The notes under the pieces: generated by a model
Seen by the model: the letters and a program-made list of their open reading frames with translations, nothing else
Told to the model about the DNA's origin: nothing
Database searches by the model: none
Shown here: in pieces, positions 18,001 through 64,000 of the stretch
Layout of the letters: the number at the start of each line of letters is the position of its first letter
Numbering within the stretch: position 1 is the stretch's first letter
Source: Takakia lepidozioides
Lineage: Eukaryota; Plantae; Bryophyta
Length of the DNA: 64,000 nt
Direction of reading: 5' to 3'
Assembly: GCA_030704615.1 (NCBI GenBank)
Contig: CM060732.1
Location: 32,612,001 to 32,676,000 of the forward strand
Program-made: the position numbers and the translations under genes

Positions 18001-19390
18001 CGCTTTTGCTTATACCGGAGCAGTCCATTTTCAAGTGGAATTGCGATTTAACCCCCCTCCTCAAGTCCTGCATCACGGACTTCGTAAGCTCATCCTTCTG
18101 GCAAAACTTCCGGATCTTCCTTTGGAACGCCGTCTCGCCCCTATACACCAACAGGAGCTGCTGCTTTCTACTTAAAGCATCGGCCACCACATTGTACGTC
18201 CCGGTTTGTATTGGATATCCACGTCAAACACCGCCAAAGTATCTTGCACCTAAGTTGTTTTGGGGACAAACTTGGGCTGCGTGGCAAAATACTTCACCGT
18301 ACATTGTCCGTGAACACCTTCACTGGGTTGGAATCAACATAGTGGCGCCAAGCTCAAGACAGTGACACCCGCCTTCATCTCTTTCTCGTGCGTCGGCCAC
18401 CGTCGCTCCACTTCGTTCAGTTCTTACTTTCATAAGCCACTGGACGTCCATCTTGCATCAGTACACCCCCAATCGCAAAGTCCGACGCATCTGTATGAAT
18501 CTCGAACGGCCGATCGAACTCCGGGATTTTCAAGACTGGAGCTTCCACCATCCGCTGCTTCAATTCAGCAAAAGTTTGCCACACAAGGTGTTCCATACCC
18601 AGACTTTGGATTTACACAGAAGGTATCACAACGGGACCGCGCGATCTTGGCGAAATTTCTCACATACTTCAAGTAATAGGAGGCGAATCCTAGGAAGGAT
18701 CGCACTCCCGGGACCGAAGTCGGAGGCTCCCAGTCCAAGATCGCCCTCAGTTTCTGTCATCCATTTGATCCCATCCTGTGTAATCACATGCCCCAGGAAC
18801 TCCACTTTTGTGACCCCGAATTCGCAATTTGAAGCTTTGGCATACAGCTTCCTTCCCGCAATTTCTGGAACACCCTTTTGAGGTGCTCAGGTGCTCCTCC
18901 TTTGTTTTCGAATACACCACGATGTCGTCGATGTACACAATCACAAAGTCATCCAACCACTCCTGGAAAAGGCTGTTCACAGCGTGCTAAAGGTCGCGGG
19001 TGCATTGGTGAGCCCAAAAGGCATCACCAAGAACTCATATGAACCATACCTTGTCCTGCACGCGGTCTTCTCCTCATCTCTTTCCGCCACTCGAATTTGA
19101 TGATAGCCGGAGCGCAGATCGATCCGGCTGAAATACTTCGCTTCTGCCAACCGATCGAAAAAGGTCGTCGATCCTTGGCCAAAGGCAAAGGATACCGGTT
19201 TTTGATAGTCACCTAATTCAAAGCCCTGTAATCGACACACATCCGCAGCGTCTCATCCTTCTTGTCTGTGCGAATAGCACTGGGGCTCCGTAAGGTGACT
19301 TACTCGGCCGGATGTACCCCTTTGACATTAGATTTGAGCTGAGTCTTCAGCTCGACCAACTCTCTGTGGCTCAACCGGTAGGGCGCCTGG
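15007..19390 (-). mobile_element. Ty3/Gypsy chromovirus, 5'-truncated: RT-RH-INT-chromodomain, PPT and 3' LTR (~15007-16630)
   Basis: [52 protein letters not shown], chromodomain-like EVEAI...KWKGY...SW at ~16730-16860. Purine tract ggggaggaaa precedes the LTR, which ends ...gcgaca. Many frameshifts. Confidence 0.88.
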
Positions 19391-22300: not shown

Positions 22301-24200
22301 AAGATGGTTGTGGAGGATATGGATCTAAATTTAGCTTGGAAAGCCAGGATGGACAAGGGCGAGATAGGAGTAAGTATTCGAGGTCTTGTATCCAAGGAGA
22401 GGTCGTTCAAGATTGGACCTATTGGTATAATATGTGATGGAATGCGGATGAGAACTGGGTAGTGGTCAGAGTTATATATGGGGTCATATAGTATTGTGCT
22501 GTGTATTGTGTGAGGTTGTCGTTAGGTGTTTTGAGATAGTAGCCATCAATGAGACTATGTGAGGTATAGTCCAGTCCTCCTTGCCTCGAGAAAGGTTGGT
22601 TTGAGGGGATGTACTGGAATCCAAGATTTTGGGTATAGCATGTCTACTCTATATCTTTTAACGATGGAGGGGAATGTACTCCGTTATACAGTCTTCCACG
22701 TAGGGTTAGGTCTCTGTTGAAGTCTCCCGCAAGAAAGATTACAGAGGAGGAGTTAATTGGGTTATTGGAGAAATCTGCAATTTGTTGTAGTATGTCTTGG
22801 GTAAGTGGTGCATCATCTGGATGTGAGGGCATATATAGATGGATAATACTGAATTTTGGATAGGGACCGATGTGTATTTGCACTATTTGTAGGTGGGTTT
22901 CTGAGGTGAGTTGGGATACTAATCTTGGAGGTTGTATCTTGCGAGTGCATGGATTTGTGTATTCCAATTGCTACTCCTCCCCGAGCTGGTTGATACGGTA
23001 GGGCGCGTCGTCTGGTGTATTTTCTGGTGAGGGGGGCTACCGTATATTAGATGATATTTATGTAATATCTTATTTATGTACGTATTAGACGTATGCGATT
23101 GGAGTTTGTTTCTTGCAGTAGTATAATGTGTGGGGGATTCGGCTCTTGGAGTATAAGTGATAGGGTGGGGACACTAGAGGCGATGGAGCTGACGTTCCAT
23201 GTAAGACATATTAGGGGCTGATCTAGTAGGTAGTCTTGATCATCAGGAGGAGGGTTGGTTGGAGGCAGGGGTATAGCTAGTGGTGAGACAAAAACCGAGG
23301 GTAGTGTGGCAGAGAGGAGGGTGTTTAGTGTGGCAGAGAGGATCTCCGGTGATATGAAAGGAAACTTCATGGTGATATGTTGTAGGGTATGGCAAGATGT
23401 GGGTGGGAGAGATAACAGATACGTTGTGAGTACTTGTGAATTTGGCCAGGTGGAGCTTGGAGGAGATTCAGATAGTTGTGGAGGCAGTTGAGGGGGTGTG
23501 GTGGGGCTTTATTGCGATGATGTGTTCAGGGAGTGTTTGGAGTTTTGATAGTGTGGATAGTATGCGTTGTCTCCAGTTTTCAGAGAGGTAGGATGTCACA
23601 TTTTTTCGATTTTGGTGATATACATATTATATATGTAAAAAGTATATGGTCATTAGGGTAGCATCTGAGTTTGTAACTATTATGAGCGAGAAGTGGGTGC
23701 TCGGATATGGTTATACCATATGGAGGTGCATTTGGATTGTCCTGGGTCAAGAAGATGATTGTGGTTTAGGTAGGAACAGGGCAAAGACATCAAGAAGGTG
23801 TTTATACTATAATTTTAACGTAATTGTGGAGGGGTAAGAGTATATTCCATATCTTGTTTGGCGTTGGATATGCGTTTAACAATGTTTTCAATGGGTCTGG
23901 TATATGACCAACATTTATGATTGGGTTAGTAGCTAGTGTGTGTTATGCAACAGTGTCGGTTTGCAGGGCCTGGGTTGGGGTGGATATCTCACATCGTGAT
24001 GAGTAGTATGGTAGTTGCGTAGTTGTATAGTTGTGCATCCATTTTTGTTAATTTTTGTTTAGCTTGTTTGGAGATGGGAGGATCAGTATTTGTTCTACCT
24101 TTTGGGATAGTTGGGAGGTTTTGTTGTTCGTTGAGAATAGTGGCTGGGAGGAAAGTGTTGGGTTGTTTTTATGCTGCTGAGAGCGATATTTTTGCAACGA
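19390..24200 (-). mobile_element. Partial copy of the Dualen-like LINE (APE and RT regions)
   Basis: CLTWNVSS, LLQET, FLAGDFN, GPDNIPNE. Truncated just before the chromodomain and heavily frameshifted. Confidence 0.9.
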
Positions 24201-24859
24201 CGCAATGGCGTGAGCGTACGCTCACGCAGGAGTGACGTGGAGTGAGCATGATGTCAGTAGGCTGATATGGCAACAAATGCTTGATGTGGCACTACGCCGT
24301 CATCTCCCACGTCAGAATGAACATGCGCCGCCTATAACCGAGGATGGTCCTATAACCGTGGGATTAATGTAGGGAATCCTTGGCTGAATACAATGAAGAC
24401 TACCATGGGGCCTACAATTGTAGCATCCAACATTGTGCAATTACAAATGTTTGTTTCACTTTTACAATTACAAGGACGAGAGAAAATATCATCACAAAGT
24501 ATGCGCCATAGAGGTTGCCACGGGAAGACCTTGCTCCCTCCCAATAACAATGAGAGTTAGGATCATCTTCAAAAGATGATTGCAGTGCATAGCGACAGGA
24601 AAAACATATAGACTTCGAAAGGTGCAATGATGCATGTGCTTTTAGAAGTTGCCACTCAGAGCTCACTCAGTATAGTTGGAAGTATAATGGAGGGATAAGG
24701 GACGCCATATCATTGCACCGCCGACGATGTTGCAAACGAATTGATTTGAATTGAATTCCATGACAATGTTGCAAATTGCACATTTCATAACATGGTCGTC
24801 CACATACCACATTGCATAGCAGATGCTACCTATGTGTTGTATCCGCTGCAATAGAGTAT

Positions 24860-25940
24860 CAACCTCGTTGAACTCAGAGTGGCCTAGTGAACGAAGTTGT
24901 CACGTTTGGAATCGCAAACCATCATCTTCAAAAATATGAAATACAAATGTTTGCAGGGTATGAATTTACCTCTCTTGCCCAAACTGGTTGATAGCATTTT
25001 CACAAAATCAGGACAGTGCAATTGGGGGGAAATTGGAAACCGTGATGTCGTAGGCCCTGTCATGAACAGCAGATGTCAAAGTGATCATTGTGTACACCCG
25101 ATCATCATATACTTGTGAGGGCATTTCCGTGGTGCTTGCAACACGAGCTTGGAGCATTCTTACGGACTCCACTTTGCCGAAGTGTTCAGCGGTTGGAGGG
25201 AAACGCCGAACCAGCTTTCCATCTCGTTTGGTTGGCCACAAGTGAGGATTTGCCGAAGGGACCCGAAATGATGCAGAAGTAGAAGCACATGCATGCAGTT
25301 GGGGTTGTCTCGTAAGGGAAAAGTCGGCCTTCTCCAGCATTGCCAATCTCCTGACTCGTGAGATGTGTTCCCACCTTGACGGGCCAACGGTTGGAGAAGC
25401 TGGCTTCATCCCATGAATGAAATGACGCACAGTTCCATGCACACATTTACTACAATCGTCTGCAGCAGAACCAGAACTTGTGGTTTTTGGCTTTGGTTGG
25501 CCGTATGGACACATCACACCCGTGAGTCGGAATGAAGTCGGAGTAAGAGTCCGGGCACCACCTCTGGATATAGATGAAGTGCACTTTTCGAAATTAGTTG
25601 CCCTGATCGCTGTACATTTCACACGAGACCCTACACTTGTGCGTTCTATGTACCAAACGTGGTCGGGGCATGTGGACTCCAGCACATCAAGGGGGTAGTT
25701 TCTCTCTTGCATCATTTCAGTAGCACTATTTGATGCTGGAGCCTGCCTTCGTGTCCGAGGTTCCCGACATCGATCTGTCATGCAGGGGAACACGCGGCTT
25801 CGAGAAGTTATCACGGTCTGCCATGTTCGAATCGGAATCCGAGCCAGGTGGGATGTTCAATTTCCTCTTACAGGAGCCGAATCTCTCCTCCCTTTCAAGA
25901 TGTGGAATTCTAGAAACAAGTGTCGTTCCCTGGACATACA
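24860..25940 (-). pseudogene. SWIM zinc-finger ORF copy (TE-associated)
   Basis: Reverse complement of 42600-43690. Confidence 0.8.
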
Positions 25941-25964
25941 ACAAAAACAAAAAAAAACAAAAAA

Positions 25965-27063
25965 AACTGAAGTGATGATCGGCGGCACCGACAGAAGTGA
26001 TGGTCGGCACCGACCATCGCATCCACCCCAATGCCAAATGTCAAAAACCACCTTAAATTTATTTAAAAATAATAATAATCGGAAAGTGATGATCGGTGGC
26101 ACCGATAGAAGTGATTGTCGGCACCGACCATCACATCCACCCAAATGCCGAATGTCAAAAGCCAAAAGAAAAAAAAAAACAAAGTGATGATCGACGATAT
26201 TGACAGAAGTGATGGTCTGCACCGACCATCGCATCCGCCCTAATGCCGAATGTCAAAAGCCAAAAAGAAAGATCGGCGACACTGACAGAAGTGATGGTCG
26301 GCACCGACCATCACATCCACCCAAATGCCGAATGTAAAAAAGAAAAAACAAAATAAACGGAAGTGATGATCGGCGGCACCGACAGAAGTGATGGTCGGCA
26401 CCGACCATCGCATCCACCCAATGTCAAATGTCAAAAGCCACCTTAAATTTATTTAAAAATAAAATAAAATCGGAAAGTGATGATCGGTGACACCGATAGA
26501 AGTGATTGTCGGCACCGACCATCACATCCACCCAAATGCCGACTGTCAAAAGCAAAAAAATAAAAAAATAAAAAAATAAAAAAATGATGATCGGCGATAT
26601 TGGTAGAAGTGATGGTCTGCACCGACCATCGCATCCGCCCTAATGCCGAATGTCAAAAACCAAAAAGAAAGATCGGCGGCACTGACAGAAGTGATGGTCG
26701 GCACCGACCATCACATCCACCCAAATGTCGAATGTCAAAAGCCGAAGAAAAAAAAAAAAAAAAAAAAAAACGTAGAGTGGTGATCGGTAACTGAAGTGAT
26801 GGTCGGCACCGATTATCACATCCACCCAAACCCAAATGCCGAATGTAAAAAATAAAACAAAATAAACGGAAGTGATGATCGGCGGCACCGACAGAAGTGA
26901 TGGTCGGCACCGACCATCGCATCCACCCCAATGCCAAATGTCAAAAGCCACCTTAATTTTTTTTTTAAATAAAATAAAATCGGAAAGTGATGATCGGTGG
27001 CACCGATAGAAGTGATTGTCGGCACCGACCATCACATCCACCCAAATGCCGAATGTCAAAAGC

Positions 27064-27095
<32 letters not shown>

Positions 27096-27780
27096 AGAAA
27101 GTGATGATCGGCGATATTGACAGAAGTGATGGTCTGCACCGACCATCGCATCCGCCCTAATGCCGAATGTCAAAAGCCAAAAAAAAAGATCGGTGCACTG
27201 ACAGAAGTGATGGTCGGCACCGACCATCACATCCACCCAAATGCCGAATGTCAAAAGCCGAAAAAAAAAAAAAACAAAAAAAACAAAACAAAACAAAACA
27301 AAACGGAGAGTGGTGATCGGTAACTGAAGTGATGGTCGGCACCGATCATCACATCCACCCAAATTCCAAATGTCAAAAAAAAAAAAAAAAAAAAACGGAA
27401 AGTGATGATCGGCGGCACCGACAGAAGTGATTGTCGGCACCGACCATCGCATCCACCCAAATGCCGAATGTCCAAAAAATAAATAAACATAAAATTTATA
27501 TATATATATATATGATCGGCGGCACTGGCAGAAGTGATGGTCGGCACCGACCATCCATCCGCCCAAATGCCGAATGTCAAAAGCTAATTTTAAAATTAAA
27601 ATTAAATAAGAAAAAAAAAAAAAAAAAAAAACAACAACAAACAAACAAACAGAAAGTGATGATCAGCGGCTCAGACAGAAGTGATTGTCGGTGTTGACCA
27701 TCACATCCACCAAAATGCCGAATGTCCCAAAAGAAAAAAAAACAAAAAAAAACAAAACGGGGAGTGATGATCGGCGGCAC
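25965..27780. repeat. Array of ~18 hairpin-containing ~75-bp units separated by A-rich tracts
   Basis: Unit aagtgatgatcggcggcaccgacagaagtgatggtcggcaccgaccatcacatccacccaaatgccgaatgtcaaaa. Confidence 0.95.
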
Positions 27781-27914
27781 CCACAACCCTCGCCCTCACA
27801 ACTTTCGTTTCCTGTTTAGACGTCAAGTTGCTCTTGTTCTAGGGTGGAGAGAGAGAAGAGATGAGGGTGACAAGGACGGTTTTAGTGAGGCTGTGAATTC
27901 TGTGTTGAGAGAAG

Positions 27915-32345: not shown

Positions 32346-33960
32346 TTGCAATCTCCTGAGTTGTGTGATGTATCCCCACCTTCATAGGCCAAATACTTGA
32401 TGAAGGAGGCTTCATGACCACTGATGGTCGCACAGTCCCACGCACGCACCTACCACAGTCGTCAAGGCAAAACCAGAATTAGTGGTTCTTCACCTCTGCT
32501 TGCCCGTAAGGCTGGAACAAACCAGTGAAGGTCGGAGCCGGAGTGCAAACCTTGCCTCTGGATATGGAGGACTTGCACTTCTCACGATTGGTGGCTCTGA
32601 TTGTCGTGCATTTCACTCGAGACCCAACACTGGTGCGTTCTATGTGCCAGACTTCGTCAGGGCACATGGACTCCACCACATTGGGGAGGACGTTCGACTC
32701 CTGCACCCCACAGTGGGAGATGTCTGGGTCTGGCTTTGTAAGAAGTTCCTCCGCACTGGACATTTCGGAAACAAATCTCTGATGCAATGGAACACGTGGA
32801 GTGGAGAAGTTGTCCCTGTTCGGCTTGTGCGAGTCTACATCCGAACCAGGAGGGGTGTTCAATTTCCGTTTACAAGAGCCGAATCTCTCCTCGCCCAGTC
32901 CAAATGCGGAACTCTAGACACCAGAGGAGCTCCCTCCGCACACATGCTGACAGCCTTGGCTATTTTGTTGGGATCCGCCGATCTTCTTGTAGCATGCAAC
33001 ATCAACTCAGACTTGTCGAGACCATTGCCACCAACGGCACCCCACAAGAACTCCCGGTATCTCGTTTGTTGTTGTAGAGCTCATATTGGATCAACTTTTT
33101 GTCGATACCGTAAACCTCTCTTTCAAGGAAGACAGTGCCAATCTGGTACTCGAAACGTGTTGCTAGGAGATGTTCCTCCGCAATTGCAAAACCATTGTCA
33201 TCAGCATCCTTCAAGAAATGGACAGGTTTCTCGACAAAGTAAAACTCCACTTCAGAGGAACCCATGCTGGTGCACGAGAAATTTTGAGCCACTGGAAGCC
33301 TCAAAGTGCATAGTCCCATGACTTGTGTGTGGAGTCTTGTTACAAACGACAGTAGGGATTACATTTCTACGCCGTTAGAGTTTGCACCGATACTAACGAG
33401 GCCATCTTGTCATCGTCTTCTATGTCCCAAACCGTTAATATAAGGTTGAGCCTAAACCCAGATATTTGAAAAGCTGACATACCGTTAAAGAGTCTTCCAA
33501 AAACAGTTGTTAAGCAGTTATGTGCCTGTACCGACCCAAGTGAAAAGATGACGGAGACGAAAGTATTGGAATCCAATGTTATTCCAACTTGTTGAGGCAC
33601 GTGGAATTCGACAATGCAATATTGAGTGCAGGGTTGCAGAAAATTCGGCGGAGAACCAATGATACATGGCATGTTGTGCCACATATGAAGATTTCGAACC
33701 GGGAAAAACCGGCAAAAGCTAGTCTAATAACTCATCCATCCAAATCGAATCTATCACCAAGCAATAGTACTACTAATGGCCATACCTAACTAGTTCAAGA
33801 CGACGGCCACTGCCGAAAGGACAAATGTGCCTTTGCGAGGTGGACACGTATGCCGTGAACACATGCATAACGAGATCGAGGCCCCGGCTGGTACTAATCG
33901 CACGACGTCTCGCAGCCCAGTAGTTCGTGATTTTCAAGCTGGAGAGTAGCAGGAGACTAA
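32346..33960 (-). pseudogene. N-terminal part of SWIM-finger protein gene (continues at 63513 on +)
   Basis: EERFGSCKRKLNTPPGSD, WHIERTSVGSRVKC, KFWFC and QEIA are homologous to 42600-43190. Stops and frameshifts present. Confidence 0.75.
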
Positions 33961-34043
33961 GTTCCCAGCAAGAGAGTGGAAGGCGTAGAAGATAGTCTTC
34001 CTTTTTCACTTCAGCGAGAGACAAGAAGAAGGCGAGAGAGAGA

Positions 34044-36003
34044 ATGAGAGGTCGCAAGCTCAACATGACGCTGAAGGAGATAACAGAGGAGAGCGCGGCC
34101 CTGGAAACAGAGCACATGGCGGAGGAGGACCAGCCGCGCGGAGAAGCTGGTGAACGAGGGGATGAAACAGCAACAGAGGGCGACCCTGACGACATGGACA
34201 CAGAGGAGCCCGACACCCTTTTGAGGAAGCGACGCCGAAGGGGAAGAAGGCTGCGCAAATGGGGAGGACGGCTGTGATTGTGGCTCAAGCAGAGGCATCT
34301 GGGAGTGCTCTTCCCAAAGGACCGAAGATGATTCTCTTCTTTCTCTTGATTGTGGGCAGTGGAGAAGGCATGAAAATTGCGTTCGTTGACCTACGCAGTT
34401 TTTATGCCCTCTTTACTTCTGTTTTCTATGTCAACATTTTGTGTTAGCATTGTCAGATTTGTATGAGGGCTCATAGAAGTGTAGACGACAGAGAAAACAT
34501 GGTGCTCTCAATTCAGACTTGTCCTTTTGCTGGACCTTTCATTCTGCACATAGCTGTCCACATTTTCTGAACCGCAGAAACCAATGGATGAGAGAAGGGC
34601 AATGCGAGCACCCCCAAAAATTGTGTGTTCTCACACTGTCACGCCCTGCACTTCTCTCACTGTATTATCAATGAAGTTGAATGAAGGGGAGAAAGAGAAC
34701 CCCCTCAAAATTGAGTGCGTTGACGCATGCAATTTCTCTCAATGCCCTTCTCTCATCCTTCGGTCTCTGCTTTCCTTAATCTATGAAGAAAGGTCCGGGA
34801 AGTCTGAGCAGTGAGAGACGTCTTTCAAACTTCAAAAATTGAATGCGTTTACAGAGCTCTTTTATGAGTGAAGAAATTGGGTGCGTTGACGCACTCAGTC
34901 CTAGGCAGGAAAGGAGGGAGAACCCAAATATATATATATTCCACTTGTGGCCCTCCAAAATTGAGTGCGTTGACGCACACAGTTTCAGAGGGCCACAAAC
35001 GCAGCTGTGGTTCGTCCCCCTTGAGTCATGCTTCTGGTTTTGGAGGGTAGTTCATGTTTGTTGCCTGTTTGGACACGCTTACTTCCATTGGGCAAATCAA
35101 AACCCTTCACAACTGAGTGCGTTGACGCGCTCAATTTTAGAAGGTCTGGTACCTGATGTTTTGTCTGTCCTTCCATTGAGATTAGCTTCCGGTTTTGGGA
35201 GGGGGGGGGGGGATTCCTCTTTTGGTGTCTGTATGGACATGGCAGCCAAGAATGGTGGAATGATGTCAACAGCTTATACCTGACGAAGGGGGACTTTTCG
35301 GGACAAATGGTAATCCTCCACTCCGATAAAGGGTAGCATTCTTCTCTTGTCTACTTCATTTCATTTTTTTGTTCACCCATCCAAAATTGAGTGCGTCAAC
35401 GCACTCAATTCTGAAGGGGTGAAGTTGTTCTTTTGCCCTTTTGTATGCATTCGCTCATTTGTGCTTCGTGTTGTTTTCAGTGCAGACCCACCTTTTTGAA
35501 GCCATCTGTCTCGTCAGGGTGCACCCTTCTTCGACTCTTGCTGCAGTGAAGAAGTTCAGGCTTCATAGGAGAGGTTGTTTCATGAGCAATTACGTGGATT
35601 CGAATGTCTGTTTGAGAAAGTCGAATGGAACACCATGGAGAGGGGCCAAGGAGAAGAGTCCAACTTTTATTCAAACTGTTATTGAGACACATTCCCATCC
35701 GGGGGCGTGCATCGTCGACTTGACTCTTGGAACAGGTTTGACATCTCTCCTTTTGTGGTCTTTTTTCCCTTAGTACACAATTTGTAACATCTTAGTAACA
35801 CAAACTGTGTCTTGCAGGAGCTTTGTACCATGCTTGGCAAGGCAGCGGGCCGACATTTGTTGGGTATGGATGCAGCCATTTTTACTGAGCCTCCAAGAGT
35901 TGCAAGGGCCAATATCTGCCGCCAAAGAGCATGAGGTTGTAGTGCATGTCGATATCAATGAGGGAGACGACAAGGACCTCGACGACGATCTCACATATGA
36001 ATA
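34044..36003 (+). pseudogene. Intron-containing DNA methyltransferase-like gene (N6_N4_Mtase/beta-class SAM-binding end); 5' limit uncertain
   Basis: Exon 35486-35735 (WRGAKEKSPTFIQTVIETHSHPGACIVDLTLGTG) splices GT-AG to 35818 (ALYHA, +1 frameshift, CKAAGRHLLGMD). This matches the K...LI...S.PGD.VLD...G.G...A...GR..IG.E pattern. Confidence 0.62.
34707..35410. repeat. Interspersed 26-bp palindromes aattgagtgcgt-NN-acgcactcaatt
   Basis: Clear copies near 34707, 34874, 34957, 35111 and 35385; a degenerate one near 34835. Confidence 0.9.
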
Positions 36004-38890: not shown

Positions 38891-40914
38891 ATTAATACTT
38901 GCATTTACATCACAAAACTACAAACATTAGCAGGAAACCTCTTCAAATGACATCACACCCACATAGCACTACTTAATTATTGCACCCTACACACACCACA
39001 TATCTCAGGCGAACCCCTATGTATTATAGTAATACGTCAAAATTATAGGCTCACCAGGAAAATGAAACAAGATTCTACCTTATGTGGAAAGTTCAAAGGG
39101 AGAATAACCATTCATCAAACTAGGTCTAAATCCAAACCCTCCACCCCCCATAAAACTCAAATGCAGGCTGCAGGACAAAGAACGCTATGTATCCAGGCCA
39201 TCTGAAGTCTACAACGGTTATCGAACATACTCTCCCTGGTGAATGCAGGGTTGACTAGACCAAAATGGACGTTACTAGTACAATTTTAGATGACTGCAAT
39301 TGATGGTGTCATCAATTGAAATTGAATCAATTCATTAAAACCAGCAAATACATATGTCATTGGATTCATAGCTTCAATACGCACCCATAACAACTCTCCA
39401 ATCATGAATCCGATAAGAAATGACTCCGCTATGGACTTTTGAACACCGTCATTGTGGACTGTTACCGCAATTATTGGAATTAAAATGGACTGAAATTCTC
39501 TTTTGTGCCATTAGTGTTGTCATTTGACTCATATGGACTAATATATGTAAAACAAATAGGCGTTTTTTGAAAAGTCCATAACTCATCTTGTTTTTTGGAT
39601 TTTGGGTGTCATTTTTTTCTAGAAGTATAAAACCTATAATCTTCAATGGCTAGCTGTCATATTGAATTTTTTTTTGTAAACTCTAATTTTTAGTTTTTCA
39701 TAATTTTTCTAAATAATATACTAAAATATTTAATGAATTATATCTTTAATATTTGGGGTAGGACTCTTTACTAAATATGTTCAGTATACCATTATCTATC
39801 ACTAAGAAAATATTTTGGGATAGTATCCTTAACTTTTGTTTTTTGGTCATGGACTTTCATGGAGCAAGATCTGCCGTTTTTGGTCCACTCAACCCTGCAA
39901 CTGCCCGTCCCAAGACCTCATTCTCTGCCACTGTGGACCCCTGCTATGATGAGATTACAACAAATCGCTTGGCCGATGCAGTATATTGTTTGGCACTCAA
40001 CCTCGACTGAAGCATACCTCCTTAAGAGCTCATGTTGCCCGCAACCAAGCCCATGCACAAATCCAAGCCCACTGACCCCGCCCAACTTTCAAACCCATGG
40101 ATATCATCCAAATAACACACTCCACATTCATCCAAGGGATAACGACTCTTTTGCCCTATCCCTTTCATCCCCGTTCACACCAAGAAATGAAATAGAAAAC
40201 TATAATCAAAAATAATATAATAATCAAAAAATAAAAATCATACAAATAATGGTAATAAAAATAATTCTCATATATTTGGACTCTGTATGCTCATGACACA
40301 TAAACTGAAACCCAATAATATTACATTATATATACATACACTATTACGCCCAAATATACTACGAACACCTCGTATATACTTAATAATACCAAGCCCTAAA
40401 AACATCCGCCCCCATACGAAACCTAGCGTACCGACCCCAACACAAAATATGATTAATCATCCCCCAAAGACGGCAAAAGATAGATACACCTCAAAACTTT
40501 TGTCTTGCCGCAATTACTCTAAAGCTAGATCCACGCCAAATAATACCACAACCAACCATATGTTGCATTCACCCCTTCACAAAATACTCACTATTCAGCT
40601 GTACGGTTCAGGAACAAATAGTCTATAGCCGTCGTGACATGCAAAAATATGGGGGATGCCTCCGCGTGAGCCTGGCCGCGTGAGCGTGTAAGCGCGGCCA
40701 AGCTCACACCACGTCACCGGTTCTCGCCACATTGGCTCAAAGGTCCGACGCCTCGTCAGCAGTCTTCGCCATCGTGGATGACGCCACATAACGCCTCGCC
40801 ATGTCATTTCCACGGACGTACCTATGACTGTGGACAGAACAGGGAGAAATGGGCCTATAGACGCGGAATAAGTAGTCGTAGACTGTTTTTATTTTTTATT
40901 TTTTATTTTTTCCG

Positions 40915-42555
40915 CATTTGACATTCGGCATTTGGGTAGATGTGATGATCGGTGCCGATCATTACTTCTAGTTTTTTTTTTTTTTTTTTTTTTTAAATAT
41001 TTTTTTTGCTTTTGATATTTGGCATTTGGGTGGATGTGATAATCGGTGCCGGCCATCACTTCTGTCGGTGCCACCGATCTTTTTCTTTTTTTTCTTTTTT
41101 TTCTTTTATTAAAAAAAATACTTTTCTTTCATTCGGCATTTGGGTGCCGACCATCACAGCTGTCGGTGCCGCCGATCATCACTCCCCGTTTTTTTTTTTT
41201 TTTTTTTTTTGTGGGACATTCGGCATTTGGGTGGATGTGATGGTCAACACCGACAATCACTTCTGTCGGTGGCGCTGATCATCACTTTCTGTTTGTTTGT
41301 TTGTTGTTTTTTTTTTTTTTTTCTTATTTAATTTTAATTTTAAATTAGCTTTTGACATTCGGCATTTGGGCGGATGGGATGGTCGGTGCCGACCATCACT
41401 TCTGCCAGTGCCGCCGATCATATATATATATATAAATTTTATGTTTATTTATTTTTTGGACATTCGGCATTTGGGTGGATGCGATGGTCGGTGCCGACAA
41501 TCACTTCTGTCGGTGCCGCCGATCATCACTTTCCGATTTTTTTTTTTTTTATTTGACATTTGGCATTTGGGTGGATGTGATGATCGGTGCCGACCATCAC
41601 TTCAGTTACCGATCACCACTCTCCGTTTTGTTTTGTTTTGTTTTGTTTTTTTTGTTGTTTTTTTTTTTCGGCTTTTGACATTCGGCATTTGGGTGAATGT
41701 GATGGTCGGTGCCGACCATCACTTCTGTCAGTGCCACCGATCTTTTTTTTTGGCTTTTGACATTTGGCATTAGGGCGGATGCGATGGTCGGTGCAGACCA
41801 TCACTTCTGTCAATATCGCCGATCATCACTTTCTGTTTTTTTTTTTTTTTTTTTTTTGGCTTTTGACATTCGGCATTTGGGTGGATGTGATGGTCGGTGC
41901 CGACAATCACTTCTATCGGTGCCACCGATCATCACTTTCCGATTTTATTTTATTTAAAAAAAAATTTAAGGTGGCTTTTGACATTTGGCATTGGGGTGGA
42001 TGCGATGGTCGGTGCCGACCATCACTTCTGTCGGTGCCGCCGATCATCACTTCCGTTTATTTTGTTTTATTTTTTACATTCGGCATTTGGGTTTGGGTGG
42101 ATGTGATAATCGGTGCCGACCATCACTTCAGTTACCGATCACCACTCTCCGTTTTTTTTTTTTTTTTTTTTTCCTTCTTCGGCTTTTGACATTCGGCATT
42201 TGGGTGGATGTGATGGTCGGTGCCGACCATCACTTCTGTCAGTGCCGCCAATCTTTCTTTTTGGCTTTTGACATTTGGCATTAGGGCGGATGCGATGGTC
42301 GGTGCAGACCATCACTTCTGCCAATATTGTCGATCATCACTTTCTGTTTTTTTTTTTTTTTGGCTTTCGACATTCGGCATTTGGGTGGATGTGATGGTCG
42401 GTGCCGACAATCACTTCTATCGGTGCCACCGATCATCACTTCCCGATTTTTTTTTTAAAAAATAAATTTAAGGTGGCTTTTGACATTTGGCATTGGGGTG
42501 GATGCGATGGTCGGTGCCGACCATTACTTCTGTCGGTGCCGCAGATCATCACTTC
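40915..42555. repeat. Array of ~16 hairpin-containing units separated by T-rich tracts
   Basis: Unit tttgacattcggcatttgggtggatgtgatggtcggtgccgaccatcacttctgtcggtgccgccgatcatcacttt; reverse complement of the 25965-27780 array. Confidence 0.95.
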
Positions 42556-42556
42556 T

Positions 42557-42598
<42 letters not shown>

Positions 42599-42599
42599 T

Positions 42600-43690
42600 A
42601 TGTCCAGGGAACGACACTTGTTTCTAGAATTCCACATCTTGAAAGGGAGGAGAGATTCGGCTCCTGTAAGAGGAAATTGAACATCCCACCTGGCTCGGAT
42701 TCCGATTCGAACATGGCAGACCGTGATAACTTCTCGAAGCCTCGTGTTCCCCTGCATGACAGATCGATGTCGGAAACCTCGGACACGAAGGCAGGCTCCA
42801 GCATCAAATAGTGCCACTGAAATGATGCAAGAGAGAAACTACCCCCTTGATGTGCTGGAGTCCATATGCCCCGACCACGTTTGACACATAGAACGCACAA
42901 GTGTAGGGTCTCGTGTGAAATGTACAGCGATCAGGGCAACTAATTTCGAAAAGTGCACTTCATCTATATCCAGAGGTGGTGCCCGGACTCCTACTCCGAC
43001 TTTCACGGGTGTGATGTGTCCATACGGCCAACCAGAAGCCAAAAACCACAAGTTCTGGTTCTGCGCAGACGATTGTAGTAGATGTGTGCATGGAACTGTG
43101 CGTCCTTCCATGGTGATGAAGCCAGCTTCTCCAACCGTTTGGCCCGTCAAGGTGGGAACACATCTCACGAGTCAGGAGATTGCAATGCTGGAGAAGGCCG
43201 ACTTTTCCCTTACGAGACAACCCCAACTGCATGCATGTGCTTCTACTTCTGCATCATTTCGGGTCCCTTCGGCAAATCCTCACTTGTGGCCAACCAAACG
43301 AGATGGAAAGCTGGTTCGGCGTTTCCCTCCAACCGCTGAACACTTCGGCAAAGTGGAGTCCGTAAGAATGCTCCAAGCTCGTGTTGCAAGCACCACGGAA
43401 GTGCCCTCACAAGTATATGATCGGGTGTACACAATGATCACTTTGACATCTGCTGTTCATGACAGGGCCTACGACATCACAGTTTCCAATTTCCCCAATT
43501 GCACATGTCCTGATTTTGTGAAAATGCTATCAACCAGTTTGGGCAAGAGAGGTAAATTCATACCCTGCAAACATTTGTATTTCATATTTTTGAAGATGAT
43601 GGTTTGCGATCCCAAACGTGACAACTTCGTTCACTAGGCCACTCTGAGTTTCAACGAGGTTGATACTCTATTGCAGCGGGATACAACACA
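42600..43690 (+). pseudogene. SWIM zinc-finger ORF, 5'-truncated, TE-associated
   Basis: YDITVSNFPNCTCPDF...FIPCKHLYFIF (CxC...CxH). In-frame stops near 42811, 42885 and 43637. Confidence 0.82.
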
Positions 43691-44319
43691 TAGGTAGCAT
43701 CTGCTATGCAATGTGGTATGTGGACGACCATGTTATGAAATGTGCAATTTGCAACATTGTCATGGAAATTCAATTCAAATCAATTCGTTTGCAACATCGT
43801 CGGCGGTGCAATGATATGGCGTCCCTTATCCCTCCATTATACTTCCAACTATACTGAGTGAGCTCTGAGTGGCAACTTCTAAAAGCACATGCATCATTGC
43901 ACCTTTCGAAGTCTATATGTTTTCCTGTCGCTATGCACTGCAATCATCTTTTGAAGATGATCCTAACTCTCATTGTTATTTGGGGAGGGAGCAAGGTCTT
44001 CCCGTGGCAACCTCTATGGCGCATACTTTGTGATGATATTTTCTCGTCCTTGTAATTGTAAAAGTGAAACAAACATTTGTAATTGCACAATGTTGGATGC
44101 TACAATTGTAGGCCCCATGGTAGTCTTCATTGTATTCAGCCAAGGATTCCCTACATTAATCCCACGGTTATAGGACCATCCTCGGTTATAGGCGGCGCAT
44201 GTTCATTCTGACGTGGTAGATGACGGCGTAGTGCCACATCAGCATTTGTTGCCATATCAGCCTACTGACATCATGCTCACGCCACGTCACTCCTGCGTGA
44301 GCGTACGCTCACGCCATTG

Positions 44320-47300
44320 CGTCGTTGCAAAAATATCGCTCTCAGCAGCATAAAACAACCCACACTTTCCCAGCCACTATTCTCAACGAACAACAACAAC
44401 TCCCAACTATCCCAAAAGGTAGAACAAATACTGATCCTCCCATCTCCAAACAAGCTAAACAAAAATTACAAAAATGGATGCACAACTATACAACTACGCA
44501 ACTACACATACTACTCATACGATGTGAGATATCCACCCCAACCCAGGCCCTGCAAACCGACACTGTTGCATAACACCACTAGCTACTAACCCAATCATAA
44601 ATGTTGGTCATATACCAGACCCATTGAAAACATTGTTAAACGCATATCCAAAGCGGCCAAAACAAGATATGGAATATACTCTTACCCCTCCACAATTACG
44701 TTAAAATTATAGTATAAACACCTTCTTGATGTCTTTGCCCTGTTCCTACCTAAACCACAATACATTCTTGACCCAGACAATCCAAATGCACCTCCATATG
44801 GTATAACCATATCCGAGCACCCACTTCTCGCTCATAATAGTTACAAACTCAGATGCTACCCTAATGACCATATACTTTTTACATATATAATATGTATATC
44901 ACCAAAATCGAAAAAATGTGACATCCTACTCTCTGAAAAACTGGAGACACGCATACTATCCACACTATCAAAACTCCAAACACTCCCTGAACACTCATCG
45001 CAATATAAAGCCCCACCACACCCCCTCAACTGCCTCCACAACTATCTTGATCTCCTCCAAGCTCCACCTGGCCAAATTCACCAAGTACTCACAACGTATC
45101 TGTTATCTCTCCCACCCACATCTTGCCATACCCTACAACATATCACCATGAAGTTTCCTTTCATATCACCGGAGATCCTCTCTGCCACACTAAACACCCT
45201 CACATGTCTACCTGGTTTTTGCACACCCAAACATACACCACAACCAACCACGTCGGTTAATCTTGCTGACACCACACCAAACTCACCACTAGCTATACCC
45301 CTGCCTCCAACCAACCCTCCTCCTGATGATCAAGACTACCTACTAGATCAGCCCCTAATATGTCTTACATGGAACGTCAGCTCCATCGCCTCTAGTGTCC
45401 CCACCCTATCACTTATACTCCAAGAGCCGAATCCCCCACACATTATACTACTGCAAGAAACCAAACTCCAATCGCATACGTCTAATACGTACATAAATAA
45501 GATATTACATAAATATCATCTAATATACGGTAGCCCCCCTCACCAGAAAAATACACCAGACGACGCGCCCTACCGTATCAACCAGCTCGGGGAGGAGTAG
45601 CAATTGGAATACACAAATCCATGCACTCGCAAGATACAACCTCCAAGATTAGTATCCCAACTCACCTCAGAACCCACCTACAAATAGTGCAAATACACAT
45701 CGGTCCCTATCCAAAATTCAGTATTATCCATCTATATATGCCCTCACATCCAGATGATGCACCACTTACCCAAGACATACTACAACAAATTGCAGATTTC
45801 TCCAATAACCCAATTAACTCCTCCTCTGTAATCTTTCTTGCGGGAGACTTCAACAGAGACCTAACCCTACGTGGAAGACTGTATAACGGAGTACATTCCC
45901 CTCCATCGTTAAAAGATATAGAGTAGACATGCTATACCCAAAATCTTGGATTCCAGTACATCCCCTCAAACCAACCTTTCTCGAGGCAAGGAGGACTGGA
46001 CTATACCTCACATAGTCTCATTGATGGCTACTATCTCAAAACACCTAACGACAACCTCACACAATTACACAGCACAATACTATATGACCCCATATATAAC
46101 TCTGACCACTACCCAGTTCTCATCCGCATTCCATCACATATTATACCAATAGGTCCAATCTTGAACGACCTCTCCTTGGATACAAGACCTCGAATACTTA
46201 CTCCTATCTCGCCCTTGTCCATCCTGGCTTTCCAAGCTAAATTTAGATCCATATCCTCCACAACCATCTTGGAACTACAAACTATACTAGACTGATGCTC
46301 GTTGAACCCCACCTCTCAGATCTGGGACAAGACAACCTCTAAACTGCAACAAAGTTTTACTCAAATCACAGAATGCAAGTTAAACACGTGTATAGTGGCT
46401 CACACCTCTCCCCCAACTGGAAGATCCAAAATAAATGGAGGATACCTAACTAGAACGCAGCAAAGACAGTGGCAAAAAAGACTAAACACACATCACACAG
46501 TCTGAAAAGCTATTACATTACTCTCAACCACTCCACGAGACCCCCAATGGAGAAATGCCCCACATATCACAACCCTCCGTACAATCCCTGCATGTTACAC
46601 AGCTTTCCCGGTACCCCAGGATGATGATGACATTCAAACATGGATTAAATCAATCTCCAAAATTGGCCGAGATGCCAAAAAAACTGCTTATAATATTACC
46701 AAAGAGCAAGCTCGACATAATCAGAATAAATTTATCCAATCCTATTGTAAAATGTTGCAAGACAAGCCTCGTGTCATTCATAAATTGATCTTCAACTCTT
46801 CCCCCTCTCTCCCTTTACAAGCGATCCGGGACACAGCTGGAAGCCTACACACTTCCTCAAACTCAATAAATAAAACCATTTACCAACAGGCCTCAGCCAT
46901 GTACCAACCACAAACCCATGCATGCTTCTAGCCCTCCTCTCATATACAACACTATGCATGCCAAGCTCGTCATTATCCATGGCATGACATTGATGGATTC
47001 AAATTAGAACGAAGAGGCCCTCTAAACATAGACCTTAGTGCTTCTCATCGTGTTTACAAAAAGATCCTTGTCAGGCAAGCAAGAATTCATATCTATTCCA
47101 TCATCTGGGATACATGTCCGATTCTCAAGGAAATGTCGTCCTTGTCTTGCAATTCAAGTGTACATCCGCGGTGATTTCTTTTGCATCCCTCACCCCCAAA
47201 ATCTATCACACATGTCTTAGATTGCTATCCAACTCTAAAGCACTTGGACCAGATAATATACCTAATGAGATTCTCAAAGCATTAGACCCACATTTAGATC

Positions 47301-50300
47301 GATTAATCTTCTGATTCTTTCTACTATGCTATCAGCTACATCGAATACCCAAACCTTGGAAAAATAGCAGAACAATACTGATTTATAAAAAAGATGATCC
47401 CACTCAACTTGGTAACTGTAGACCCATAGCCTATACCATATATAAGTTATTCACCAGTACCCTAACCAACCTCCTCACGTCCTATGGAGAACAACACCAT
47501 ATCCTTAGTGATGCACAAGAGGGATTTAGAACTGCAAGAAGTACAACTAGACAAATCCAACTCATTATCTCTGCCCTTGAGGATGCACGATATACACATC
47601 AAGATATATACTTATTATACATTGATTTTAAAAATGCATTTGGCTCCATTGACCATGCTCGCATGCTCTCTGTCATGTTCGATCTCGGATACCCGACAGT
47701 TGCAGTGATGCTTGTTGGTAATATATACACAGAGAGCACCATTTACTCGGGTCCCTCATTTGGAGATACATCACCTATACCAATCAACAGAGGCATTATA
47801 CAAGGTGACACACTCAGCCCATACCTTTTTGTTGTATTTTTGGAGCCTCTTCTCAGATGGTTGGCCCGAGGCAACCTCGGATACCAATACATTACCTCAC
47901 CAAATAATGTCCCAACAACTGCTTATGCAGACGACCTCGTTTTACTCTTTAATAAAGCCACACATCTTAACCGGCAAATTAGAAAATTGGAAAGATTCAA
48001 TACATGGGCAGCAATGGAACTAAGCATACATAAATGCGCAATAACGGGAATTGCACACCATACTAAACATGATACATCGACTATATCAAGAATACTACAT
48101 ACCACTGTGCTCTATAATAACCACCCATTTCCATATCTAGACCATGACAGCCCATACACGCGCGTATCTTGATATACAAATGACGCCATCGCTAAATTGG
48201 GAAACTCAGAGAACATCTACAAGAAACAAATTTATATCATAGGCTACACCCTTGCTAAATTCACCAACCATCATTCGCCAAAAATTGTTTATCATCTATA
48301 CCGTAATCAGTCCATCTATAGAATACTCGTTCCATGCAACCCCATCCATGCATTAGACATGCACATTATACGATTATCAAAAAAAGTGTGCGGTCTTCCA
48401 AACAGCGCCTCTAGCGCACTGGTACAACTACCTCAAAACCTATATGGCCTTGGAACTACAACCCTAGCTGAAGCATATGCTAGAACACTGGGCACACAAC
48501 TACAAGAAGCTTTAAATGACCCTGGCAAGCTTGGAAGCATTTATCAAAGACTTCTTCAACATATCGCCTATAAATTTGGAGGTCTAGATCACTTACCTGC
48601 GATAAACCCCATTGCCTGTACCCACTTGCCGCTCCTTAGAACCTTGTACATCCTCAAACAAATGCATATTACTATTAACACATCGCTACCTAATATTCAA
48701 CTCCATACTTCACCCCTAGAAAAAGCATGGGATACAAGTCCACAACAATGCATCTTTGACCCAAATAGTAGACCCCACAAACAAACCACCCTAAAATTCT
48801 TTATGCAGTACAATATATCTACAATTTTGCAATTAACAGATGCAACTGGAACCAAGCTTATCAACCCACACGCTTTTTGCCTAAAATACCCTAGACCATT
48901 AACGCGTTCCCAACATATCCACTTAGGTCACCTACAAATCATTTTTTGCTACCCCACAACCGCCTTTCAAAATAATTGCCTCATAAACTGTGCGACTTCG
49001 CCCCATCATCCATGGGAGCTTCTACCTCAGTACCGCTCCCAACCTACACGCCCCCCACTCGCTAGACTGTTTGTCACCCCCATATCTCATCCAAGAGCCG
49101 CTCAATCCATATCTGCCCAAACAACGGATCCACAACAACCTGACACAACCCAATCAGTACAAACCCTACTAGAACCCCACTATGAGCTTGAAGAAATACA
49201 AGGTATAGTTTAAAAAATGCGAGTAGACCAATATGGAGCCTCGTGTGCTGATACTATGTACTGTGTAAATGGAAATGTGACCCCGACAAGAAAGCCACTT
49301 GGGAACATAATGACACCCTCTTTGATCGCCCATCAATACAACAATTGCAACACAATATCCAAATGATAGCTGATTACTACCGTAGAACCAACATTAACTG
49401 TTTAGCGCATATTCATAATCAGCATATTGCGGAACTGCAAACTTCTGACAAACGTTTCATTAGCCCACCAAGAAATGTATCCAACCTAAATATTTCCTTA
49501 GACAAGTGCAACCCAGACATCGATATTCTCTGCACCCACCCAAAGATCCAGACCTTCGCTGGCCTTGCCTACATATATGGACCACTAGGTTGCTACATTG
49601 GAAGCATATCACTTGCTAGATTGAACTGGCTATGGAATATGTCTCATTTAAACCCCCTACCTAGCTTGCAACCCCAGATCCCGCCAACATTTGAGACAAA
49701 AGTTTCCACACTCCTCCAGCGCTATGCTCAAGATTTGCCCCCCAAGTGTCCAATCACAACCAACAAGCTCTCTCTCGCACGTTCCCATTCAACCTTACCC
49801 ATGGCCCTCCTAGACTTTCTTACAATAGAACTTAAGTTCACTCACTCATACTATTCTAACCCTCTCACATGCCCCATGGGGATGAAGAGTTACTCCAGCT
49901 TGTATAACGCAGACCAGTGTTTCGGCTCTCTAGGTTTGGCCAGATCTCATCATTGGCAAGGTAGAGGATTTGCGCACCCCCCGGACTATAGTACAGCTAC
50001 CAAAGCAATCCATTGGGCAAGAATAGCTACCCATATATCCGCAAAAGCCTTTACCGTATTGTACATCCCGCACAATAATCACAATAACATTGATCACCCT
50101 ATGTTGGCTAGCCCCCCCCGGAATGTTCACATTTGCTATATTTGACCCACGTACGATCATCTATGAATCAACCCCACCATTACCAAAGTATATGAAATAT
50201 TCAGAGCCATCCCTAACTAAACTAGTCTATGTACACCACTCAAACAGCCCACAAATACCATGTATTTTCTTTTCACAATTAAAGCAAATACTAAACTAGT

Positions 50301-51410
50301 TGTTTGGCCCTACTGCCATAGTCTATGAACCGCAACAAGTGCCCCATATCTACCCTCGCATCAACCAAGACAAACCATGGAATCTGGCCACCCCGCGACC
50401 ACCTTGGTCAGCCCAACAACAACACCCATTCGGACAAATACCAGACTTTACAAACTTAGCCCCTTTAAAATTCCCTCCTCACCAATGTGTATATACAGAT
50501 GGCTCCCTAAAAGATGCACATGCGGGGTATGGTACATACTCTCCCGATAACAATTCAAGAACATTCAACCGTCTTCCAAGTCGGCAAAATATTTTACGTG
50601 CAGAACTCATGGCTATACATGATGCATTGAAAGCACTACCATGTCATCTTGGTTCGACCAACTACTACCTCTTTACGGATAGCTTAGTCTCTTTGTATCT
50701 CCTCTCTAACCAAAACCTTAAACCCTCCTCTCAAATTCATCACCCTGACCTTCACCTCATTAAGGCCATCATAGATATTGTACACTCATCTCCAATACAA
50801 ATTCATCTCCACAAAGTCAGATTCCATATAGGTATCACGGGTAATGAGATAGTAGACGAACTTGCCCAACTTGGAACCATCCAACTTACTACTTACCCCA
50901 CGACTGACCCTATTCACTTGACACACACATATCCATTCTGGCTGACATCCACTAAAGCTAGATTCCCGGACATAGCCCCCATTTGGGACCTGCATGCATA
51001 TATGACAGAAGAGACTATGGATCAAATCCGTCCATCGCCCACCTATCTAAAACCCTACATATCCAAATGGGTTACGCCACCTCAGCTGCTCCACCATATG
51101 TCTAATCACTTCTGGAAATCTCCAATAATCACTGATGCCCATATTAAACAAATGCTCCAATTTCGATACGGACAATACATGGGCAATCAACGGCATAATT
51201 TATTTTGGCCTCTATTATATCCTAACAAGCACTGCACATTATGTTATTCCCAACCCCCTCGAGTGGACACATGGCCGCATCTTCTTCTCCACTGTAAACA
51301 TCCCATTATCCATGGACTTCACATTACTTGACATAATCAAGGAGTTTGGCAACTCCATAAACTTTTTCTCATACACCCTAAAACTAGATGGTACAACCTC
51401 ATTAATCTTT
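44320..51410 (+). mobile_element. Dualen/RandI-like LINE: APE - RT - chromodomain - PCIF1-like MTase - RNase H - CCHC/RHN, 3'-truncated
   Basis: APE (TWNVSS, QETK, GDFN, SDH) ~45360-46125; RT (GPDNIPNE, IDFKNAF, QGDTLSPYLF, YADD) ~47240-48060; RNase H (YTDGS, RAEL, FTDS, GNEIVD) ~50490-50880; CTLC...H...C then [R>stop]HN ~51230-51340. Frameshifted remains of one long ORF. Confidence 0.85.
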
Positions 51411-63512: not shown

Positions 63513-64000
63513 CCCTCGGAGGGGGCAGGCTTCGCTCTTCAGCGAGCCCCCTCTATACATGCAGGTGCTTCTACTTCAGCAAGTTCTCGAGTGCCACCAC
63601 CCAACGCTGATTTATGGCCAACAAAACAAAATGGGAGGCTGGTTCGTCATTTCTTTCCGACTGTCGAACACTTCGGCAAGGTGGAATCCACTCGAATGCT
63701 TCAAGGTCGTGTTACAGACACTACGGAAGTTTCACATCCCGAGTATGGACGAATCTACACTATGATGACCTCCACATCCGCTATGCATGACCGATTGTAC
63801 GACATCACAGTTTCAAATTTCCCCAACTGCACCTGTCCTGATTTTGTTGGCATGCTTACAACAAGTTTGGGAAAGACAAGAAAATTTATACCTTGCAAGA
63901 ATCTGTATTTTATCTTCTTGAACAGAATGGTTTGTGATCCCAAACGCGACATCTTCATTCACCAGGCCACCATGAGTTTCAACGAGGTGAATACACTTAT
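63513..64000 (+). pseudogene. C-terminal part of SWIM-finger protein gene
   Basis: GASTSASSRVP...LWPTKQNGRLV...YDITVSNFPNCTCPDF...PCKNLYF is homologous to 43190-43660. Confidence 0.82.

Follow-up and report, generated by a model that had tools for sequence, protein, structure and literature searches.

A decayed PCIF1/CAPAM-like domain in an apparent Dualen-type LINE of the bryophyte Takakia lepidozioides, a probable pseudo-methyltransferase module

Introduction

PCIF1, also known as CAPAM, is the cap-specific mRNA adenosine-N6 methyltransferase, in which a helical domain forms the cap groove (PMC8287941, PMC13290413), the tryptophan of the PEWRD motif contacts the cap (PMC13290413), and the catalytic motif IV, NPPF, is required, so that mutations there inactivate the enzyme (PMC8287941). 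Plants are stated in a review to lack PCIF1 homologs, and rice poly(A) RNA to be without cap N6,2'-O-dimethyladenosine (m6Am) (PMC12973405). Here, we examine a stretch of 64,000 nucleotides from the bryophyte Takakia lepidozioides (assembly GCA_030704615.1, contig CM060732.1, positions 32,612,001 to 32,676,000 of the forward strand; hereafter the window, in whose own numbering all positions are given), where a decayed retrotransposon, apparently a Dualen-type long interspersed nuclear element (LINE), carries a domain homologous to PCIF1. The original prediction, made from the sequence of the window alone, held that this LINE family encodes, between the reverse transcriptase (RT) and RNase H, a PCIF1-clade methyltransferase that could mark the RNA or cDNA of the element or bind the cap, and that its altered catalytic motif might signify inactivity.

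Two groups of retroelements provide the closest points of reference. DIRS elements are ordered RT, RNase H, then a methyltransferase domain, whereas the Dualen or RandI elements are LINEs with two endonucleases, reportedly the subject of work by Kojima and Fujiwara in 2005. The domain of DIRS1, a tyrosine-recombinase retrotransposon, was assigned to the PCIF1 clade by Iyer, Zhang and Aravind in 2015 (PMC4738411), judged to be inactive from its substituted catalytic and substrate-binding residues, and suggested to act by binding transcripts or by mimicking PCIF1 (PMC4738411). Published Dualen domains include an AP-endonuclease (APE), RT, RNase H, a CCHC knuckle, a restriction-like endonuclease, cysteine proteases, a PHD finger and a SET methyltransferase (PMC5029228, PMC9977147), and in Chlamydomonas, activity of these elements is on record from mutation-accumulation lines (PMC9977147). 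A full-text literature search that combined PCIF1 with LINE, non-long-terminal-repeat (non-LTR), DIRS and Chlamydomonas returned no described PCIF1-like domain in a LINE.

Results

The window domain is homologous to PCIF1, with a resemblance that goes far beyond chance. A 266-residue open reading frame (ORF) in frame 1 of the forward strand (49345-50145), located between RT and RNase H on the same strand, contains all seven peptide blocks on which the original prediction was built, in the order in which they had been quoted, namely, ISLARLNWLW (49606-49635), FETKVSTLLQRY (49690-49725), TLPMALLDFL (49792-49821), YYSNPLTC (49849-49872), YSSLYNADQCFGSLG (49891-49935), GRGFAHPPDY (49960-49989) and AFTVLYIP (50047-50070). 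The ORF matches the Pfam family PF12237, which is named PCIF1_WW and actually spans the methyltransferase region, at E 5.7e-6 and 26.5 bits (49687-50004), below the curated cut-off of 31.1 bits; intact relatives score 51-52 bits, above that cut-off. A phmmer search over 1.84 billion cluster representatives recovered 213 relatives at E<1e-3, of which 64 reach E<1e-10, the long ones among them being single ORFs with the order RVT_1, PCIF1_WW, RNase_H. PF12237 is matched at E<1e-3 by 45 of the 62 relatives that were aligned, and no other methyltransferase family is matched among these 62.

When a profile of 18 relatives was compared with all PDB sequences, it found solely CAPAM, from zebrafish and human (E 1.7e-8 and 3.2e-7), in matches that are collinear across ~160 residues, and when 24 relatives were aligned by hhalign with a WW+PCIF1_WW protein of 700 residues, the probability was 97.8 and E 1.1e-12 over 233 columns. 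The HMMER alignment to PDB 6irv displays RVWCLLRRY, SLPVHVFEAL, FASPLNC, YCSAFPDTDGYFGSRG, FEANPPF and SFIVFIPEW, so that the human PCIF1 blocks given in the original prediction proved accurate. The family profile was needed to reach CAPAM: with the window ORF alone, phmmer against PDB sequences yielded just a chance match to a major histocompatibility complex protein (E 1.3). The broken pieces of the window element were searched separately; the search for homologous proteins gave 17, with few outgroups for comparison with cellular PCIF1, viral and DIRS domains. In the ESM Atlas, the nearest cluster is labelled Chlorophyta. Among the clusters nearest to residues 820-1080 of the relative P0078 that match PF12237, some carry the labels Nucleocytoviricota and Uroviricota, suggesting that small PCIF1_WW proteins (~280-330 residues) are present in giant viruses and possibly in records labelled as phage.

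The predicted structure points to the same fold. For the window ORF, AlphaFold2 gave a model (predicted local distance difference test score, pLDDT, 84.6; predicted template modelling score, pTM, 0.72) whose sole significant Foldseek matches were the six CAPAM entries (E 3e-6 to 5e-5), and VIA-align superposed it on human CAPAM with Z 14.0 and a root-mean-square deviation (rmsd) of 3.7 over 183 residues, residues 64-266 of the model matching CAPAM 417-611; generic Rossmann methyltransferases came next, at ~Z 6. For P0078:820-1195, from an intact chlorophyte-like relative, the model (pLDDT 83.7) fitted human CAPAM 417-668 still more closely (Z 22.3, rmsd 2.6, 235 residues), with other adenine methyltransferases (KsgA, Erm, METTL5 and M.TaqI) at ~Z 8. 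Neither the helical cap-groove domain nor the N-terminal methyltransferase segment of CAPAM has a counterpart in the structural matches of the window and P0078 models, and no WW domain was matched, a chromodomain being found upstream of the PCIF1-like domain instead. The domain therefore corresponds to no more of CAPAM than its C-terminal methyltransferase lobe (human residues 417-668), to which the structural matches are limited. In the window, Pfam, the AlphaFold2 model, Foldseek and VIA-align place the core part of the domain at 49534-50142 on the forward strand. Thus, the Pfam and PDB profiles and both superpositions bear out the first claim of the original prediction, that the retrotransposon family carries a fold of the PCIF1 clade.

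The catalytic motif is altered in a manner that the same prediction had noticed. Alignments to CAPAM and to the relatives show HPPD at 49975-49986 (forward strand) in place of the catalytic NPPF of motif IV. Composition does not explain this change because codons for Asn and Phe need no G, whereas Asp, now present, does. Motif counts were taken from cluster representatives, 40 in the clade of the window element, which is poor in G, and 20 in a chlorophyte-like clade. In the former, 28 of 40 have His at the first position of motif IV and none has Asn, Asp or Ser there (0/40); Pro follows in 35 of 40; the third and fourth positions vary freely (P/H/T and N/D/T), an aromatic residue occupying the fourth in 4 of 40; and two intact subfamilies differ here, with AHPPD in one and AIPPH in the other. 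In the chlorophyte-like clade, Asn comes first in 10 of 20 and Tyr or Phe fourth in 14 of 20, and nine representatives have exactly NPEY. Some long intact ORFs of this clade nevertheless lack the catalytic motif (HPTH in P0145, HPPH in P0147), so that catalysis, if it exists, would be dispensable for the element.

Other parts of the domain are held much more tightly. RDxxFG, SPL and a tryptophan position are near-invariant in both clades, and hhalign aligns the chlorophyte-like PxWRD with the PEWRD of CAPAM. The ratio of nonsynonymous to synonymous substitution rates (dN/dS) found no suitable pair of copies: P0004 and P0151 share ~240 identical residues, past which a frameshift is their only difference, and other pairs are either >95% or ~40% identical, with synonymous sites saturated at ~40%. 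In the absence of a pair with informative divergence, identity per domain was used instead. Between the two intact subfamilies (40% identical overall), it amounts to 42.6% in the PCIF1-like core, 42.3% in the endonuclease, 49.3% in RNase H and 33.3% in the linker, and by this measure conservation of the PCIF1-like domain equals that of the endonuclease.

The host element is a decayed LINE body at 44300-51406 of the forward strand, with an approximate 5' boundary and a truncated 3' end, and is collinear in tblastn comparisons with the full-length relatives P0174, P0072 and P0157. At its 5' side, an APE remnant consists of two pieces in different frames (45364-45872, forward strand; Pfam Exo_endo_phos, E 1e-3 and 4.3e-3, below cut-off); in the relative P0175, where RT is present as well, the APE scores 42.6 bits, above cut-off. 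The RT follows at 47198-48583 (forward strand; RVT_1, E 6.8e-14 at 47726-48046), with two stops in frame and 36% identity to residues 571-1048 of P0174. After an unannotated stretch comes a chromodomain remnant (49181-49323, forward strand; Pfam Chromo, 14.8 bits), split by a frameshift and a stop, such that YELEEIQGIV is read in one frame and YYVLCKWKCDPDKKATWEH in the next; the chromodomain of the relative P0001 scores 38.8 bits (E 9e-10) and is located directly upstream of the PCIF1-like domain. The C-terminal strands of the PCIF1-like domain continue in another frame past a frameshift (50123-50239, forward strand; tblastn of P0157), and the peptide MFTFAIFDPRTIIYESTPPLPKYMKYSEPSLTKLVYVHH falls within the segment aligned by tblastn to P0157 from residue 159 on. 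RNase H (50486-50875, forward strand; Pfam RNase_H, E 1.7e-12) and a CCHC zinc knuckle of the form CTLC...H....C (51233-51295, forward strand), which in relatives precedes the restriction-like endonuclease, complete the preserved part of the element.

The C-termini of relatives with the PCIF1-like domain show conserved CCHC, RH(D/N), PD and E motifs, the endonuclease motifs being recognised by eye in the alignment. A profile of nine such C-termini matches the R2 proteins 9nl3, 9dou and 9nl2 in the PDB (E 1e-12 to 9e-11), across the CCHC and C-terminal regions of these proteins; the nine-sequence profile was needed for this, as the C-terminus of P0157 alone gave no phmmer match in the PDB. Pfam and profile searches found no recombinase in the window element or its relatives. 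The order of domains in the host element family is, then, APE, RT, chromodomain, PCIF1-like domain, RNase H, CCHC and restriction-like endonuclease, and because Dualen/RandI elements are distinguished by having both APE and an R2-like endonuclease (PMC5029228, PMC9977147), we assign the element, by domain content, to the putative Dualen-type, dual-endonuclease LINEs.

The PCIF1-like domain occupies the same position in the G-poor clade of the window and in the chlorophyte-like clade, and the segment is found at the same place in hundreds of relatives; it is a standard module of the family and not a capture by a single copy. A weak PHD-finger match (E 0.002) was seen upstream of the domain in the chlorophyte-like relative P0113, at residues 85-142; a PHD finger in one clade and a chromodomain in the other, at the corresponding position, hint that the domain may be preceded by a chromatin-reader module in either clade.

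The sense strand of the window element is poor in G from ~44 kb to ~51.4 kb (GC skew -0.3 to -0.4). Across the LINE family, the sense strand has 10-13% G, with 7.6% G at the third codon positions of an intact ORF, and the G-poor stretches include 44300-51400 of the window, L001:3971-6220 and L005:128-1063; the encoded proteins, as a consequence, contain much His, Pro and Thr and little Gly. This bias is intrinsic to the family and does not come from decay. L001-L004 are among the listed contigs that bear P0157. L001:3971-10706 and its counterparts in L002-L004, from several Joint Genome Institute (JGI) metagenome samples, contain the same 5'-truncated copy, an intact 749-residue ORF with the PCIF1-like domain, RNase H, CCHC and endonuclease, and a second LINE, with RVT_1 and Exo_endo_phos, faces this copy tail to tail.

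The window copy itself is a dead pseudogene without function, and the locus an ordinary dead copy. Its frame changes at least four times over the two APE pieces, RT, the PCIF1-like domain and RNase H; in-frame stops interrupt the frames aligned to relatives; and the PCIF1-like domain is broken near 50112-50132, where tblastn of P0157 switches frame (50112/50132). Homology to P0157 ends at residue 576 of 749, window position 51406, so that the endonuclease core is missing and the CCHC alone is left. In a search of sequencing runs, one of those containing the sequence is labelled plant metagenome, and no RNA run contains the locus; an Rfam scan of the window gave no match.

The window also contains an inverted duplicate of 40886-49099, at 19382-27615 on the reverse strand (blastn, 89.6% identity over 8514 columns), which takes in a ~100-base tandem array outside the LINE and breaks ~80 bases upstream of the chromodomain, at the point that matches position 49099. 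The LINE copy within it (19382-24525, reverse strand) lacks the PCIF1-like domain. We considered this copy as evidence against the domain and rejected it as such: it belongs to a segmental duplicate that extends past the LINE, and having been broken just before the chromodomain, it is uninformative on whether the family carries the domain. The arms of the duplication comprise the 5' two-thirds of the LINE with flanking sequence and are ~13 kb apart, with a SWIM-finger and DNA-methyltransferase locus (32346-36003) between them. The tandem array (40886-42597, and 25940-27785) has ~16 units of ~94-106 bases, T-rich at their ends, and terminates in a run of 40 T (42558-42597). Just upstream of the LINE, there are dispersed repeats of 72-76% identity (42606-43185 against 32346-32935, and 43230-43669 against 63558-63997), the former overlapping the start of the repeated element at 32346-36003.

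Discussion

The segment at 49534-50239 is a decayed domain of the PCIF1/CAPAM-like fold, an integral module of a LINE polyprotein that is of the Dualen type by its domain content, and taken together, these observations make it probable that in the clade of the window element the domain is a pseudo-methyltransferase kept for binding. Because the domain is conserved like the endonuclease, a binding pseudo-enzyme is the most likely form, and the retention of a non-catalytic binding role in this clade, as judged from sequence conservation, the most likely course. The ligand could be the cofactor, the 5' end of the RNA of the element or another nucleic acid, and the domain may cooperate with its immediate upstream neighbor, the chromatin-reading domain. 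Adenine methylation may persist in some chlorophyte-like relatives, in which the fold is complete and motif IV is NPEY. The original prediction is, accordingly, partly supported, right on the identity of the domain and wrong, or at best unproven, on its activity: the replacement of NPPF by HPPD is real and inactivity is the better reading of it (no Asn, Asp or Ser and few aromatics among the 40 representatives), and the proposed CAPAM-style cap binding and self-marking of RNA or cDNA are unsupported as they were put forward, with the helical domain, the N-terminal segment and the WW domain absent and the window copy, as a pseudogene, incapable of any activity itself.

Several other explanations have to be weighed against this one. 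That the resemblance to PCIF1 reflects chance or composition, or that the window copy by itself captured a fragment of a host gene, might be suggested by a lone dead copy scoring 26.5 bits against a cut-off of 31.1, in an element whose G-poor sequence is skewed in composition. This idea has, however, already been refuted and retains next to no probability: the domain sits at the same position in hundreds of relatives, in continuous ORFs of up to 2104 residues, the results obtained with PF12237, the PDB profile, Foldseek, VIA-align and hhalign all contradict it, and plants are reportedly without a cellular PCIF1 that could have served as the source of the capture (PMC12973405). It is also improbable, if far less so, that the HPPx form is still an active methyltransferase, in which a conserved His replaces Asn or Asp and which marks element RNA, cDNA or target DNA. 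The prevalence of His (28/40) and of the Pro after it (35/40) would fit such an enzyme, as would the retention of RDxxFG and SPL, which probably line the cofactor pocket, and a conservation of the domain as high as that of the endonuclease. Yet (D/N/S)PP(F/Y/W) occurs nowhere in the clade of the window, positions 3 and 4 vary freely, with an aromatic residue in 4/40, and the intact subfamilies differ even at position 1 (AHPPD vs AIPPH). Moreover, we know of no His-type adenine-N6 methyltransferase. Mutations in NPPF, for their part, inactivate CAPAM (PMC8287941).

Only slightly better are the prospects of the view that the domain is now a mere structural spacer or folding scaffold of the polyprotein, with no ligand of its own, which we likewise consider unlikely. 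Loss of the catalytic motif throughout the clade of the window and repeatedly in the chlorophyte-like clade (HPTH in P0145, HPPH in P0147) is what a spacer would allow, but SPL, RDxxFG and the tryptophan are near-invariant between clades that are very far apart, and the linker close by has fallen to 33% identity. Pocket-like motifs that are kept while a linker drifts are more than a spacer needs.

The binding pseudo-enzyme, which we favor, has its own points of weakness. The binding role of the LINE domain is predicted from sequence and modelled structure; the strong preference for His at the first position of motif IV (28/40) could reflect function rather than decay; and the conserved motifs of the putative cofactor pocket would be compatible with residual or altered catalysis. 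The comparison of conservation consists of identities between two subfamilies rather than a codon-based test of selection, the cluster representatives include pseudogene fragments that make the motif counts noisy, and the placement in the Dualen clade follows domain content rather than an RT phylogeny.

The feature is a retroelement-borne PCIF1-like pseudo-enzyme, and PCIF1-clade domains in retrotransposons were previously known only for DIRS1 elements. With the present case, the cap-methyltransferase fold is seen for a second time and in another class of retroelements, as a standard, conserved module of a non-LTR LINE clade that is represented in green algae and in a plant. The absence of PCIF1 homologs that has been stated for plants (PMC12973405) is thereby qualified, as degenerate homologs carried by transposons exist; given that plants reportedly have no others, these copies may be the only PCIF1-clade sequences in such plant genomes. 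The chlorophyte-like NPEY forms are candidates for a transposon-encoded adenine methyltransferase, and the activity of Dualen elements in Chlamydomonas (PMC9977147) means that an experimental system exists. A broader scenario, which we put forward tentatively and regard as doubtful in its entirety, would have Dualen-type LINEs gain a CAPAM-type adenine-N6 methyltransferase lobe at around, or prior to, the time when green algae and land plants diverged. The chlorophyte members that have NPEY, a complete fold and the PxW tryptophan, whose CAPAM equivalent contacts the cap, would remain active and mark the 5' end of their own RNA, their cDNA or the target DNA, the clade of the window would keep an RNA- or cofactor-binding pseudo-enzyme paired with a chromodomain, and such transposon-borne copies would be the sole PCIF1-clade proteins of land plants.

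Compared with PCIF1/CAPAM (PDB 6IRV-6IS0; PF12237), the LINE domain shares the C-terminal Rossmann lobe and a collinear series of motifs, that is, LLxRY, LP..L, FASPLNC, D..FG(S/A), the motif IV loop, (I/V)xxPxW and the final (V/L)xN..G strand. It differs in having no WW domain, helical cap-groove domain or N-terminal methyltransferase segment, in its location inside a retrotransposon polyprotein, with a chromodomain on one side and RNase H on the other, and in its catalytic motif, where the NPPF of CAPAM is HPPD in the window, HPxx across the clade of the window and NPEY in many chlorophyte-like relatives.

With DIRS1, the LINE has in common a PCIF1-clade domain within a retrotransposon polyprotein, a domain judged to be catalytically inactive. 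The host, however, belongs to the non-LTR LINEs, has APE as well as a restriction-like endonuclease and yielded no tyrosine recombinase, and its RNase H follows the domain, itself preceded by RT, whereas in DIRS elements the domain comes last of the three. The resemblance to the Dualen/RandI LINEs extends over the whole plan of the element, from the N-terminal APE through RT, RNase H and CCHC to the C-terminal R2-like restriction-like endonuclease, together with variable accessory domains, to which the family described here would add two that the published lists cited above do not name, the PCIF1-like domain and the chromodomain.

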